A stretch of DNA of 64,000 nucleotides from Dimorphilus gyrociliatus (GCA_904063045.1 CAJFCJ010000019.1:2920684-2984683), one strand, 5' to 3'. Numbered from the stretch's first letter, positions 9,941 through 15,689 are shown. The notes: generated from the sequence alone by a model not told the origin. Translations and numbers: made by a program.

Positions 9941-10834
9941 CTACCTGAAGATAACAAACAAAACCCCAACCATGCCCGCTAAAATTGTTACTGTCAACGA
10001 GAAAGGAGTTTGTACATTCCACCAGTTTGCGTATTTTGAGTCTCCAGAGTAAACGATGACGTCATCTACTTTGCGCTTTCTAATGTTTTTTGTAACAAAA
10101 TTCCCCGAAGCGTTTTTAACAGACTTTTGGAAAGAGTTAATTTGTTGAGTTGAAAGAGGCACATGACCATCCAAAATATACCAGCGGACACCCTTTGAAC
10201 ATGGGGGCGTTGTTAGAGATCCTCTATAAAAAAAGTAGCTTCCTAAATTAGTTGGAAGAAGTGAGAGTAATGCAACTGGACGAAGTTTCGCACCAAGGCC
10301 TATTGCTTTGGAAAGTGAAGATATAATTTGAGTATAGCCAGGATTGTGTTTTTTAGAATCTTCGATATGAAAAGCCCAAACTGCAATACCGTCTTCTTTA
10401 CCAATAGCATCCTCGTAAGATTTATAAGTTTTAGAAAAATGATAGACTTGTACTTCCATTCTCATTTCTCTATTATCTATAACATGCTCCACTCCTCCCC
10501 AATGGAAGACGACATGACTAGTCTTATATTCTCCTTCTAAACCACCATCCCAAACCAAATAATCTCCTTTCAATTCTAAGTGAACGGTGTTTTCTTTGAC
10601 TACCAAGTTCCATTCAGCTCCTGGTGGGACACTCTCGTGTCCTCTTAATTGAAAGAAAGTGAGATGAGGAAAATATTGGACGGAAGAAGTAGTATTGATT
10701 CGTATAGGAGATTGTCCGCTTTCACAGAGAGGGTATTTTTCGGACCATTTCTCCTGGTGTGAGTAATCCCACGTTTCTTTTAGAAAAACGAAAGAAAGCC
10801 GAGAGATTATGAAAAAGATCTTGTAAATTCCCAT
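9941..10834 (-). CDS. Alpha-carbonic anhydrase-like protein with putative signal peptide and C-terminal hydrophobic anchor; probably acatalytic (CARP-like)
   Basis: WDY..W..C..GQSPI, FHWG..VEH, GSLTTPPC motifs; hydrophobic N- and C-termini; two zinc-ligand His positions replaced (HVVFHWG, MEVQVYH). Confidence 0.88.
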   Translation of the reverse strand: MGIYKIFFIISRLSFVFLKETWDYSHQEKWSEKYPLCESGQSPIRINTTSSVQYFPHLTFFQLRGHESVPPGAEWNLVVKENTVHLELKGDYLVWDGGLEGEYKTSHVVFHWGGVEHVIDNREMRMEVQVYHFSKTYKSYEDAIGKEDGIAVWAFHIEDSKKHNPGYTQIISSLSKAIGLGAKLRPVALLSLLPTNLGSYFFYRGSLTTPPCSKGVRWYILDGHVPLSTQQINSFQKSVKNASGNFVTKNIRKRKVDDVIVYSGDSKYANWWNVQTPFSLTVTILAGMVGVLFVIFR

Positions 10835-12408
10835 CTGTAGATGGTAGCTTGTCGTCTGCTATTGCAGTATACCCTTCTATGACGTCATAAACGGAGAGCT
10901 CGTGACGGACTGGTTTTCAGTTTTCGTTTAGCCATTTTTATGCTTGTTCCCAAAAGAATAATCAAATAGAGCGAAAAAATAGCAAATAATGGAATATTTA
11001 TTGATTTCTACTCCAGTTGCAGTTTATTCTGTTCACATAAACTAGATGGCGCACAGAACTTAGAAGATCAATAGACAGATGTTTTTTTCAAAGTCATAAG
11101 AAAAATGTATTATTTTGTTTTTAGTGTAGATATATAAATATATCTAATATAAGTATTATTGTCATATCAATTATCTATAATTAATGAGTTACATAAGAAA
11201 AATACAATTATCTTTATCTATTTCAAATCTGAAAAATCTATATAATAATTGATAATCATTTTATTTCCACGGTTCAGCAAACTTTGAATGAAAGAATCGT
11301 TCATTTATATGCAAGTTTCTATCTCCTCTTCTTATTCTAAATTTCGGTAGAATCTTTCCATCGTTACGGAATAAAGTCCCATTTTGGCGAGTAATTTCTT
11401 TGTTTAGTATCTTCTCTCTTTGCGCGTTTGGCCGATAGAACATGTTTATTTCGCGTTCCATTTTTCACAAATATCTTTGAAGTTTAAATTTCTTCTTCTA
11501 TCGAGAGAAAGAGAGGGAGAGAGAGACCTTTTACGAATGTGTCGCTGTCAAGTGCTTACCGGATTAGGGCCGTTTTATGTTAAATAAACAAGAATGTGAA
11601 AGTTTTTTAGATTGGTATATTTGAAAAAGCTGGCAAATATATAACTAGTTGTGAAGAGAAAGAATCTATGCTATTAGTTTATCCGATTAATCAAGGAGAA
11701 AGGATTTTAGCTCAAAAACAAAAAGTTATTACCGGAAATCTTTTCTAAATATTTATTATTTTTTAGAGGGTTAAAAAAAACTTTTCTCTGACGTAAATAC
11801 CGTTTATTTCGTAAATAAACAATAATATTAACATGACAAAACGCGTAGTAAAAGCCATAGGATATTAGAAAATGGGATATATAATCCTCCTTTCGTTCGC
11901 TAAATAAATATTCAGCCTATTTGAAACAGTGCTCCAAAATTAAATTATCCTCAGATCAGTTCCTTAACTAAAGAAGAATTAATCTATAGATTGGATCCAG
12001 ATTAAAAGCCTAAAATATTTCGGATAAAGTAGATAAAATATATTTGATAAGACAATAACCATTATCTCTCTTTTTTAATTATTTATTTACTAAAAAAGAT
12101 AGAGAAAATAACTCAATTCGCTAAATTAATAATGAGAGAAAATTCTCCATTGAAATTTGGTTCTAATATTTTATAATCTTATTATTTTATTAAAAATTAG
12201 AGTAATAAAAGTGCGTTGACATGCCAGCAATCGATTTTAAATTTAAATAAATTGGAATTTGAATATTACTATTTGTTTATCCCCATCGAGTCTGTCCGTG
12301 TCGAAGAAGTCGGAGATTACGCACTTTTTCAGTGCAACGGCGACTTCATTGTCAATAAAATATATCTCAGAACAATTCATTCGTTGTTCAACCTCTTAAC
12401 AGCTAATT

Positions 12409-14117
12409 ATGGCTCAGTAAGTTTTCATAGTATTACGAATTTGCAAAGTGAATTGAAATTTATCTATTTCCAGCTGTACACCAGCTGTATACGATACCAC
12501 ATATAAGAATGATTTTTGTGGCTCCAGTGGAAGTCCTCGAACCACGCTTCTTTATGGGGATCGTGTCGGCAGCCATTGGTTTCCCAAAGACTACACCGAA
12601 GGTAGATTTGGAAATTGGCATAATACTCCGTAAGTTTTGTTTTAAAACAATTAACTAACTATCTCGAAAGCTTGTTTATCTGCATTTTTCGAATTTTCGG
12701 AATGTCCTCTGCTTTAAAGCTTCATAATATAAATCAAAATAATAGGCTTGATAATGCTATTTAATAGACAATATCCTGTATATACGTATAAGAAAATTGA
12801 GCGTAGTTAATGAATAAATACAGTATATACAGTATATGTAGGTGAGGTTTATAGCTCGAGGACTGCACCTGCACATTTGAGCGTCCTGTTTGCAGGTCAA
12901 ACAAGAACAAAGATCACGATAAGGCTCCTCCAAAGCAACATGTTAACGTCACATATTCGAATCCGATGGACGACAGATACAGATCGGTCTACCAATCTGA
13001 CTACGGTCTTTTATATCCATCTATGGGGAGAATTCCACTACAGGATATGGCAGCTTTTGGCTATGCCTCAGTAGCTCATCCTAGAAATGAAAGTTCCTAT
13101 GTAACTCCGGCTAATCACTGCGAGAAAGGTTGTAATCTACGATTTTCTCGCCATTTTGCCGATCATACTCCTGATCCCTCTTTGGGATCGGCACCACAAG
13201 GAGCTTGTTACCATCAAACAGCCCATTGTTCCTGTAGAAACTACTTGGGACACGTGTGTACGAGATTGCACGATTCGATGCCTTGTTGCTGCTAATCATC
13301 CCCGTCTTCTTTTCCTCTTTCGTCTGCCTATGTCTACAAGTCATGTACCAATTATTTAATTAATATACATATAGATTTACGAAACAAGAAGATGTGACGA
13401 CCTATGGCCGTGATTTCGGCTGGCAAGCGCCATCTCCTCGTTCTCAAGTTGCACGGTTGCATGGATATACTCGGCACGCTCCCCTCGATCAGGATAGAGC
13501 CTTTCCTTGGGATTGGCCAGATCCCCCCAGAGCTGCTCGACACGTCGATCAGCATTGGGCACGCGTGTATTGTCCACTTCACGGTTGTTTCCATGGTTCA
13601 GAGGATCAACGCTGTCCTCTTTTCTCTTTCGAAACACATTCTGAACAAAAGGACTGTCCCCATGCTCACTCGTGCTCTTGCAGTCCCCGACATAAGAAGC
13701 CTATTCATACCGGAAAACGCATAGAAATTAAATCTTAATTATTTAAGCGCTAGTTTATCTTAGCTTCTACCTTTCATTTAATACAGTGGAGTCGGCCCTC
13801 ATTCTCATCCCCCAATAAACGGCTGCTGCCCGCGTCCTTATTCGGATTTTGGTTATCAGACGGCTTACAAAGATTTTTACAGTTTTGTTGATTCGAAGTG
13901 GCCGATGTTCTCGCGCCATCGATACGGTGAAACTTGTGGAATTACAGATAAAACTTCGATTGACCGGCAATTCACCGACCGTTCTAGAAATGCTACCTAT
14001 TACAGCTATCCGAACGGCGGATATTGCGTTAAACAACCTATCTGCGTTCCTCCGAATCGCCGTACTAAAGCGTGCTGTAAATCTTGTGAAGCTAAAACGA
14101 GCTCGTATGTGTATTAA
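12409..14117 (+). CDS. Orphan Cys/His-rich protein with T-x-Y-x-x-D-F/Y-like motifs; exons 12409-12416 and 12474-12629, then alternative terminal exons 12896-13295, 13375-13738 or 13787-14117
   Basis: ATG GCT CA|gtaagt..ttccag|C TGT; exon 2 encodes CTPAVYDTTYKNDF..WFPKDYTEGRFGNWHNT and ends in phase 2 (cc|gtaagt); three downstream AG acceptors each open a stop-free frame of 330-400 nt in phase 2. Confidence 0.72.
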
Positions 14118-14171
14118 GTCAAAGGCATAAAATAAAAAGCAATAAATCATCAATGAAACAAAACATTATTT

Positions 14172-15689
14172 TTAAAAATATGATTCTAGAGTTCCTTTTC
14201 TTCTAACATCGCATGTCCAGCAATGGAACCCACCTCCCAAAGAATTCGCGTATCGAAGCGGCACACGAATACACTCAATACCCAAACTTTCAAACATAGC
14301 AATCGTAGTTTTTTCTTCCTCCTCAACTAGCACTCTTTTAGGATCTAACATCAATACATTCATTGATAGCCATTTAGATGACATCCATAGAGGATGTTCG
14401 TCTGGTACCAATGGTGTTGGTGGGTGAACGATTTTCCAACCGGCCTTTCGGAACATGTCAATTTGTAAACATGGTCGGTCGGGATTTGATAACACTAGTC
14501 CCGGCCCAATGATATTGAATGTTGCATCAATATGCATTGGGTTGGGATCCTTGAAGCTTAGAGTGTGAACTCTAATTCCTTTACCCTCAAGATGTCTACG
14601 CATCCATTCTATACCCATGTAATTTGTCACTTGAGATCTTTGAGCGAAAACGTCTCGACCAGCACGAATGAAATCAGCAGCATCGAAGCATGGCTCAAAT
14701 TCAGTGGTGACAAATTTTCCATCCGCAGCCAAACGATGTCTATCTTGGACAGATTTCATAGGATAGTCTTGATCATACAGGTCATCTGACATTTGCGGCT
14801 TGGGGGCCGTAGTCCAAGAAGCACCTTGTCTGAAATAATCTTTGATCAAAGATCTATATGCTCTATATTCAAAAAATCTTGAACGCCATGCCATTGGTGC
14901 TTCTATAATTTCATCACCAACTACCATGAGAATATCTCGAGGCATTGCCGAATATAATCCTGTGAAAATTTATTCGTTAAAAGGGAGAAAGTGATAATTT
15001 AACTGGACTATAATTACTTACCAGAGCTGGTAAAATCGGGCGTTTGAAACTTTTCCACAAAGTCAATTGGATCTGGACGTCTAACAACTACACCTTCCTT
15101 TCTTAAAATATCACACATATTTTCGATCTCCTTTCTGGCTTTTTCCATATGCTCAGCAGGGAAGTGAGAACCTCCATTTTGATTGAAAAAGTTCCAATGC
15201 TTTTCATTGGTATTTGCCTACATATTTCAAGAAAAACACAAAGTTAACAAATTGATATACAACTCTGAATTTTTTTATCCTTTTTTTAAAACTATTTAAA
15301 GAACGAGGTCATAAACTTTCTTAACTCAGAAGTAGCTAGATATATCTATTAGATTGTTATATATAGACATGTAAGTCAAATTTGCCATCTGCTTATCATC
15401 AAAACTATTTCCATACCTTAACTTCGATAGTCAAAGGAGGGACGGTAGCACCTTCAACTCTGCCGACAATAACCTCTTCTAGTGGATCCCACTCATTCCA
15501 TGCCCATACTGGGGAGTTAGAGTATTTCATTTCTGTATGCTCAAAACTTTCATGTTTCAAATCTGGGCGCTGGCTTTTTTGACTCGAGATCGAAAAATAT
15601 CTTCCAAGTTTTTTCGAAACTTGAGCGAGAGGGAAGCGATAAGCCTCTCTCCCTCTGCATCCTCCTTTGGCAATTCTAATTCCAATCAT
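14172..15689 (-). CDS. GATM: Glycine amidinotransferase (AGAT) with mitochondrial-type presequence, 3 coding exons
   Basis: [29 protein letters not shown] (catalytic His), GGGFHCWT (catalytic Cys); exons join as EVK|ANT and SG|LYSAMPRD. Confidence 0.96.

Follow-up and report, generated by a model that had tools for sequence, protein, structure and literature searches.

The window analysed here is a 64,000-nucleotide stretch of the Dimorphilus gyrociliatus genome (GCA_904063045.1, CAJFCJ010000019.1:2920684-2984683), and the gene in question occupies about 1.75 kb of its plus strand, in a compact genome of the annelid type. The gene consists of a short first coding exon, a constant second exon and a single splice donor that is followed by three serial acceptors. 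Its start codon, the ATG at 12409, has a favourable context, with A at -3 and G at +4. The donor at the end of exon 2 leaves the reading frame in phase 2 and each of the three acceptors enters an open frame in exactly that phase; the regions that they open are referred to here as 3a, 3b and 3c. Each ends at its own TAA stop (13293-13295, 13736-13738 and 14115-14117, respectively), and the predicted isoforms of 187, 175 and 164 residues have the same 55 N-terminal residues followed by a tail of 132, 120 or 109 residues. The farthest acceptor lies up to 1.16 kb from the donor. An earlier reading of the DNA (hereafter the sequence-only reading) had proposed this arrangement, and its coordinates and arithmetic agree with ours. 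The three variable regions have a G+C content of 0.42-0.53, compared with 0.22-0.35 for flanks and introns. As had also been claimed, neither 3a nor 3b contains a usable in-phase donor that could link the variable regions to each other, the best phase-2 GT matching four of the nine donor consensus positions. The gene has no entry in the protein collections searched and is a new annotation.

The contigs of run X7 match the window at 100% identity and leave the introns uncovered, for which reason the run was taken to be cDNA. Three joints leave the donor at 12629, to 12896 (3a), 13375 (3b) and 13787 (3c). All three were predicted by the sequence-only reading and have GT..AG borders, and they occur at similar k-mer depths of 198, 241 and 256, respectively, contig depth being only a rough guide to isoform ratios. 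An 85-nt contig ending at 12629 has a depth of 618, which is roughly the summed depth of the three branches. No joint linking the variable regions to one another was found among the contig joints of X7 and of a second run, X5. Contig 5 of X7 spans 12896-13404 unbroken, crossing the 3a stop to enter 3b; likewise, contig 7 spans 13375-13816 unbroken and crosses the 3b stop to enter 3c. The three apparent exons are therefore nested alternative 3′ splice sites of one long terminal exon. The sequence-only reading had described them as mutually exclusive terminal exons; nested splice sites within one terminal exon are the better description. The 3a and 3b contigs read on into the next region in the way predicted by its proposal of a common 3′ end, with acceptor choice deciding which open reading frame (ORF) is translated. 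We are highly confident of this architecture of one donor, three nested acceptors and three in-phase tails.

Further transcripts come from X5, a marine metatranscriptome with contigs that are 95-99% identical to the window. Its contig 1 (463 nt) begins at 12396, the start of the transcript contig, and joins 12396-12416, 12474-12629 and 13787-14071 (exon 1-exon 2-3c), such that the 3c joint is seen in both runs; the shorter side of this joint in X5 measures 156 nt. A separate X5 contig covers 13415-13575 in 3b, none covers 3a, and 3c is the only variable region to which a junction was seen in this run. The hole over 3a hints that isoform ratios vary between samples, although a hole in the contigs proves nothing. 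The X5 contigs also indicate the presence and activity of the worm, or of a sister lineage, in that marine sample. Runs X1 and X3 gave no contigs on the locus.

The sole database relative of 3a is a 109-residue ORF, 90% identical, on a 50-kb Logan contig (L001) from a related species. The order of genes on L001 is syntenic, with a carbonic anhydrase, this gene, an amidinotransferase-like ORF and an FH2 gene, and its nucleotide identity to the window is 88% over the 2 kb aligned. In L001 the ATG, the two donors, the four acceptors, every frame and the three stops are retained; the sole length difference in coding sequence, an insertion of 3 nt in 3b, leaves the frame intact. Purifying selection is strong on all four coding pieces, with ratios of nonsynonymous to synonymous divergence (dN/dS) of 0.05-0.08 (Table 1) at dS values of 0.6-1.6. 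The low dN/dS, the bias of differences to third codon positions and the retention of sites, frames and stops together show that all three tails are real, selected coding sequence. The X5 variants listed in exon 2 and 3b all fall at third codon positions, and 3c has replacements, for example Cys to Tyr. Region 3b contains no Met at all, and it can therefore be translated only after splicing to the constant exons. In 3a and 3c the acceptor marks the start of coding-type conservation, ahead of any internal ATG, from which it follows that their translation also depends on the splice to the constant exons. The 3′ untranslated region (UTR) is only 63% identical between the species, compared with 89-90% for the spacers before the acceptors, and a 17-nt insertion directly follows the 3c stop in L001 (6152-6170).

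Table 1. Features of the gene and its neighbours in the window, with divergence from the related species for the coding pieces.
Feature	Position	Strand	Content and support	dN/dS	Third-position differences
Carbonic-anhydrase-like ORF	9941-10834	-	divergent, upstream
Conserved 5′ flank with putative promoter and short 5′ UTR	12251-12408	+	75% identity with related species versus 43-54% for introns
Exon 1, coding part	12409-12416	+	ATGGCTCA, 8 nt, phase 2, then donor CA/gtaagt; joint 12416 to 12474 (GT..AG) in X5 contig; identical in L001
Intron 1, 57 nt	12417-12473	+	skipped in X5 contig 1; 43% identity between species
Constant exon 2	12474-12629	+	TTYKNDF and C-terminal FGNW patch; phase-2 end at common donor CC/gtaagt; X5 and X7 contigs	0.056	22/27
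Intronic block before acceptor 3a, 75 nt	12821-12895	+	89% identical versus 54% for rest of intron 2
Variable region 3a	12896-13295	+	acceptor ttgcag/G; 132 codons + stop; SVYQSDY; Cys/His-rich tail ending PCCC; X7 joint; 90% identical ORF P0001 in L001	0.069	45/63
Spacer a-b	13296-13374	+	isoform a 3′ UTR and pyrimidine tract/branch region of acceptor 3b; 89% interspecies identity; transcribed contiguously with 3a
Variable region 3b	13375-13738	+	acceptor atatag/A; 120 codons + stop; TTYGRDF....SPRS echoing exon 2; X7 joint; contig 7	0.046	33/40
Spacer b-c	13739-13786	+	pyrimidine tract of acceptor 3c; 90% interspecies identity
Variable region 3c	13787-14117	+	acceptor atacag/T; 109 codons + stop; YSDFGYQTAYKDFY; tail with CCKSC; X7 and X5 joints	0.083	50/78
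Probable common 3′ UTR	14118-14171	+	AATAAA at 14131 and 14141; abuts stop codon of convergent amidinotransferase-like gene (14172, minus)
Amidinotransferase-like ORF, 257 residues	14172-14945	-	54 nt from 3c stop

Conservation outside the coding sequence is concentrated ahead of the acceptors. The three pre-acceptor stretches of 48-79 nt (the pre-3a block, spacer a-b and spacer b-c) are all about 90% identical between the species, compared with 43-54% for ordinary intron, and over the final 44 nt before acceptor 3a the identity reaches 43/44. In both species the pre-3a block could fold into a 7-bp stem (UGUAGGU/ACCUGCA); inspection by eye shows that ACCUGCA could instead pair, without a mismatch, with UGCAGGU at the acceptor. 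Local folding of the block gives no exceptional stability (z-score of -0.54), and the two invariant sequences allow no covariation. We list the block as conserved but unexplained, and as a likely splice-control site. A scan of 11000-14400 against Rfam found nothing credible. In the 5′ flank, AATAAAATATAT at 12354-12365 resembles a TATA element.

Within the pre-3a block, TATATGTAG (12833-12841) is flanked by acag and gtgagg and is conserved in L001. Inclusion of these nine nucleotides as a micro-exon would leave the frame open from exon 2 to 3a, and no such joint is present in the X7 or X5 contigs. A 27-nt part of the block (12856-12882) is 74% complementary to the end of the 3b coding region (13664-13690), and both arms are nearly invariant in L001; this complementarity could be due to chance or to a long-range pairing that affects acceptor choice. 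Docking and selector inverted repeats like those of Dscam were also considered. Several pairs with 70-80% complementarity were found; the two that were compared with L001 (I2 and I6) are not kept there, and the candidates were rejected.

The predicted proteins are linked by a short aromatic motif. The minimal tubulin-binding unit of the Mn type in microtubule inner proteins (MIPs) is [TS]-[TS]-x(4)-[YF], and in the seam proteins CFAP95, CFAP107, SPAG8 and CFAP68 two such units follow the sequence [ILV]LIGNWxE to form an NWE-Mn-Mn module (PMC10973386); Mn proteins are reported to be disordered (PMC13087473). The sequence-only reading had noted a similar motif in the constant exon and in each variable region, and all four are present: TTYKNDF (exon 2), SVYQSDY (3a), TTYGRDF (3b) and (Q)TAYKDF(Y) (3c). 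The strict Mn unit is matched exactly in exon 2 and 3b, while the motifs of 3a and 3c fit only a looser pattern, [TS]xYxxx[FY], and that of 3c fits nothing narrower. This looser pattern is enriched, with five occurrences over the four coding pieces versus 0.47 expected (P of about 1.5e-4 from 20,000 shuffles); [TS]xYxxD[FY] occurs three times versus 0.03 expected. Each tail has one or two Mn-like units, placed 8-36 residues into the exon; the seam-MIP module calls for two units within about 100 residues of the NWE motif. Exon 2 and 3b have a longer unit in common, TTY..DF.....SPR[TS], that resembles TTYRAHY.....EPRV of FAP363. Beyond the short motif the three tails have no similarity to one another (BLASTP and hhalign), and no paralogue of the exons was found in the window or in L001 (tblastn). 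A recent tandem duplication of the tails was considered and ruled out, as they are mutually unalignable.

Homology searches and fold predictions were run exon by exon, and an NWE-Mn-Mn module would straddle the exon junction. AlphaFold2 models of 3a and 3b have a predicted local distance difference test (pLDDT) score of 33-34, which fits the disorder of Mn proteins but is unspecific. A word-index protein search with 3a, 3b and 3c returned only the 90% identical ORF of the related species, and the exact-product look-up of the 3a and 3c ORFs of the window gave no record. With 3b as the query, phmmer against 1.84 billion representatives gave two matches at E of about 2e-4, both of which are translations of tandem repeats and were set aside as spurious; the lack of a 3b relative in that collection is weak evidence, since the cluster of the query itself is missing too and spliced eukaryotic genes are poorly covered. 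Scans of metagenome contigs with 3b and with exon 2 found nothing. The gene is provisionally regarded as lineage-restricted.

The explanation that best accounts for these observations combines the architecture with a regulated choice of acceptor and a Mn-like role of the products, and taken as a whole we consider it probable. The exon-2 donor at 12629 is spliced to one of the acceptors at 12896, 13375 or 13787 within one long terminal exon. With use of an upstream acceptor, the coding regions further downstream would be carried as 3′ UTR (3b and 3c when 3a is chosen), and the mRNAs would form a 3′-co-terminal nested set. The conserved elements of 48-79 nt ahead of each acceptor may regulate the choice. 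The products are predicted to be intrinsically disordered cytoplasmic proteins that are rich in Tyr, Pro, His and Cys, in which the recurrent [TS]xYxxx[FY] units may act like the Mn tubulin-binding units of ciliary and centriolar MIPs; the constant head would then be a common anchor, and the alternative tails would reach different partners or sites. A bolder version, which we consider unlikely, is that a lineage-restricted gene makes three MIP-like lattice binders, each with a tubulin-anchoring head (Mn unit plus GNW patch) and one of three unrelated Cys/His-rich tails, with the choice of acceptor set by conserved RNA elements, perhaps stems in competition that make acceptor 3a accessible or mask it.

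Microtubule binding by the products, taken on its own, is a tentative suggestion that derives from the motifs, and is somewhat doubtful. The sequence-only reading had likened the motifs to Mn/SAXO repeats, and this stands as a lead only. Besides the enrichment of the looser motif, exon 2 finds its top PDB match, a weak one (phmmer, E of 0.075), in Mn repeats of Chlamydomonas FAP363, with residues 2-23 aligned to 170-191, and it carries the GNW patch, also a weak lead. The language-model (Atlas) neighbours of 3a, which are CFAP68, CFAP107, SPAG8, CFAP95 and TEX37, point the same way, at values of 0.84-0.85 that are below the reliable range. Several other results weigh against such a function. 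When each exon was scanned against Pfam with E values of up to 10, no family matched; the CFAP95, CFAP107, SPAG8/CFAP143 and CFAP68 profiles were expected to be in that scan. Searches of PDB sequences gave only chance-level matches for the tails (phmmer) and nothing for a profile of eight motif segments. The strict Mn signature is not enriched (P of 0.087). Exon 2 ends in RFGNWHN (RFGNWQN in L001), in which G-N-W is kept and the consensus Glu and Leu-Ile are missing, and the NWE motif of the seam MIPs (CFAP95, CFAP107, SPAG8/CFAP143 and CFAP68), [ILV]-L-I-G-N-W-x-E, does not occur in the exon. An RFX X-box was sought in the 5′ flank of both species and is absent, and the searches made found no homologues outside the one close relative.

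The same architecture could equally encode something other than a microtubule binder, such as a Cys/His-rich metal-binding protein or a disulphide-crosslinked structural protein, perhaps of sperm or other specialized cells, in which the Tyr motif serves another interaction. Every tail has 6-9 Cys residues, with 10-11 His residues in 3a and 3b and only three in 3c (the Trp-rich 3b has six Cys and 11 His), and nearly all of the Cys and His residues of 3a and 3b, and most of those of 3c, are invariant between the species. Such a role is also consistent with the lack of a significant match to any MIP family and of an X-box. On the other hand, every available sequence lead is towards Mn-type MIPs, and the products have no signal peptide, transmembrane segment or recognized metal-binding domain. 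We give the alternative role close to an even chance, and regard it and microtubule binding as about equally likely.

With regard to the architecture itself, the most serious competitor to nested acceptors is a set of classical alternative last exons that end at separate poly(A) sites (ATTAAA at 13727 or AATAAA at 13814 could precede such sites), the read-through contigs being minor or unprocessed RNA. Both signals are conserved in L001, and a poly(A) site after either of them is possible for isoforms a and b. The ends of the molecules are not visible in contigs, such that the poly(A) site is inferred, and both the type of run X7, deduced from its missing introns, and the roughness of contig depth as a measure count against the nested reading in the same way. 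However, both signals are part of coding sequence (the first a little ahead of the 3b stop, the second within 3c), which is enough to explain their conservation, and the stretch from the 3a stop to acceptor 3b has neither AATAAA nor ATTAAA. At its depth of 198 the 3a contig enters 3b undiminished, and the depth of contig 7 (508) is at least the sum of 198 and 241, as expected if all 3a transcripts run on. A separate poly(A) site was not found for each terminal exon, with ATTAAA at 13727 leaving a small doubt for 3b. The signals likely to be used by all of the isoforms are AATAAA at 14131 and 14141. It had been claimed that AATAAA occurs only inside or after the third variable region; this holds for 13814, 14131 and 14141, but a further AATAAA is present in intron 2 (12813), in addition to the ATTAAA at 13727. 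All in all, alternative last exons are an improbable explanation, and nested acceptors within one terminal exon are preferred.

It is very unlikely that a single isoform is functional and that the other junctions are splicing noise into fortuitous frames. Such a situation would fit the X5 run, with its junction to 3c only and no contig over 3a, and the position of 3c next to the poly(A) signals. It is contradicted by the strong selection, third-position bias and kept stops in all three frames, by the similar X7 depth of the three junctions and by the conservation, at about 90%, of the acceptors and the sequence upstream of them. Least plausible of all is a set of three genes, independent or duplicated in tandem, or of ORFs with internal initiation, each under its own promoter: the ORFs are indeed consecutive, each with its own stop, and 3a and 3c have internal ATGs, but the X7 junction contigs begin in exon 2, coding-type conservation starts exactly at the acceptors, 3b has no Met, the spacers are pyrimidine-rich acceptor regions of merely 48-79 nt and the tails show no paralogy. 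The use of one acceptor only, serial splicing and independent promoters, named by the sequence-only reading as the outcomes that would contradict it, were looked for and none was seen.

The neighbouring genes are arranged closely around the locus. The L001 counterpart of the divergent carbonic-anhydrase-like ORF (1918-2751) is recorded with Pfam PF00194, and the 1.6-kb AT-rich gap between this ORF and the gene presumably holds the promoters of both. On the other side, the convergent amidinotransferase-like ORF has the appearance of a terminal exon from a glycine amidinotransferase (GATM-like) gene; seven X5 variants are listed for it, all of them at third codon positions. Contig 9 of X7 is unbroken from 13787 to 14400 and spans both convergent genes, and their 3′ UTRs therefore probably overlap.

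The usual effect of alternative 3′ splice sites is the gain or loss of a few residues, or the switching of a product on or off. Here, in contrast, one donor and three acceptors give three full-length proteins with unrelated tails, each of which is under strong purifying selection. The small, genetically tractable locus of 1.75 kb provides a clean natural model for the competition between distal and proximal acceptors and for the role of pre-acceptor elements. If the Mn-like motifs truly bind tubulin, this would be the first case known to us in which MIP diversity arises from the splicing of one gene instead of from paralogues. On the bolder version above, the gene would be a compact cellular counterpart of viral 3′-co-terminal splicing that diversifies the ciliary or centriolar lumen.

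At the level of the products, the nearest comparison is with the Mn-repeat MIPs FAP363, SAXO/MAP6 and MDM1/SAXO6, which likewise have short [TS][TS]x4[YF]-type units in small, disordered proteins rich in aromatic residues and Pro (PMC10973386; PMC13087473). As in the NWE-Mn-Mn seam MIPs, a GNW patch is here followed by Mn-like units. The present gene differs from both groups in that there is no significant profile match, in that FGNW(H/Q)N takes the place of LIGNWxE and in that no counterpart was found for the Cys/His-rich tails.

At the level of the gene, UGT1A and the clustered protocadherins, to which the sequence-only reading had compared the locus, follow the same constant-plus-variable logic, with a family of proteins from one locus, but in mirror image: their variable exons are 5′ first exons with their own promoters, selected by promoter choice, whereas here the variable part is 3′ and is selected by acceptor choice. 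Drosophila loci of the lola, mod(mdg4) and broad type combine constant 5′ exons with alternative 3′ exons and, as here, join one constant N-terminal part to alternative C-terminal modules. Those loci are large, and their variable exons are paralogous duplicates (zinc-finger or FLYWCH) that have their own poly(A) sites, or are trans-spliced, whereas the present gene has three sequence-unrelated tails within 1.2 kb and apparently one common 3′ end. In Drosophila transformer, proximal and distal alternative 3′ splice sites compete within one exon; the serial arrangement, the earlier stop that follows from proximal use and the conserved acceptor elements as the control point are all similar. A functional transformer protein results from the distal choice only, whereas all three choices here give conserved products.

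In the polyomavirus early region and in human immunodeficiency virus type 1 (HIV-1), one donor and several acceptors give nested, 3′-co-terminal mRNAs with a common poly(A) site. The single donor joined to alternative acceptors, with the first ORF translated and the later ORFs carried as 3′ UTR, corresponds to the scheme proposed here, and the polyomavirus T antigens also have a common N-terminus that is in frame. The difference is that this is a cellular gene, syntenic in two species and with no viral features. The choice of alternative 3′ splice sites is thus a known mechanism, of which three unrelated, selected C-terminal modules behind one coding leader are an uncommon variant; its logic comes nearest to early-region splicing in viruses and to the UGT1A and protocadherin arrays seen in mirror image.

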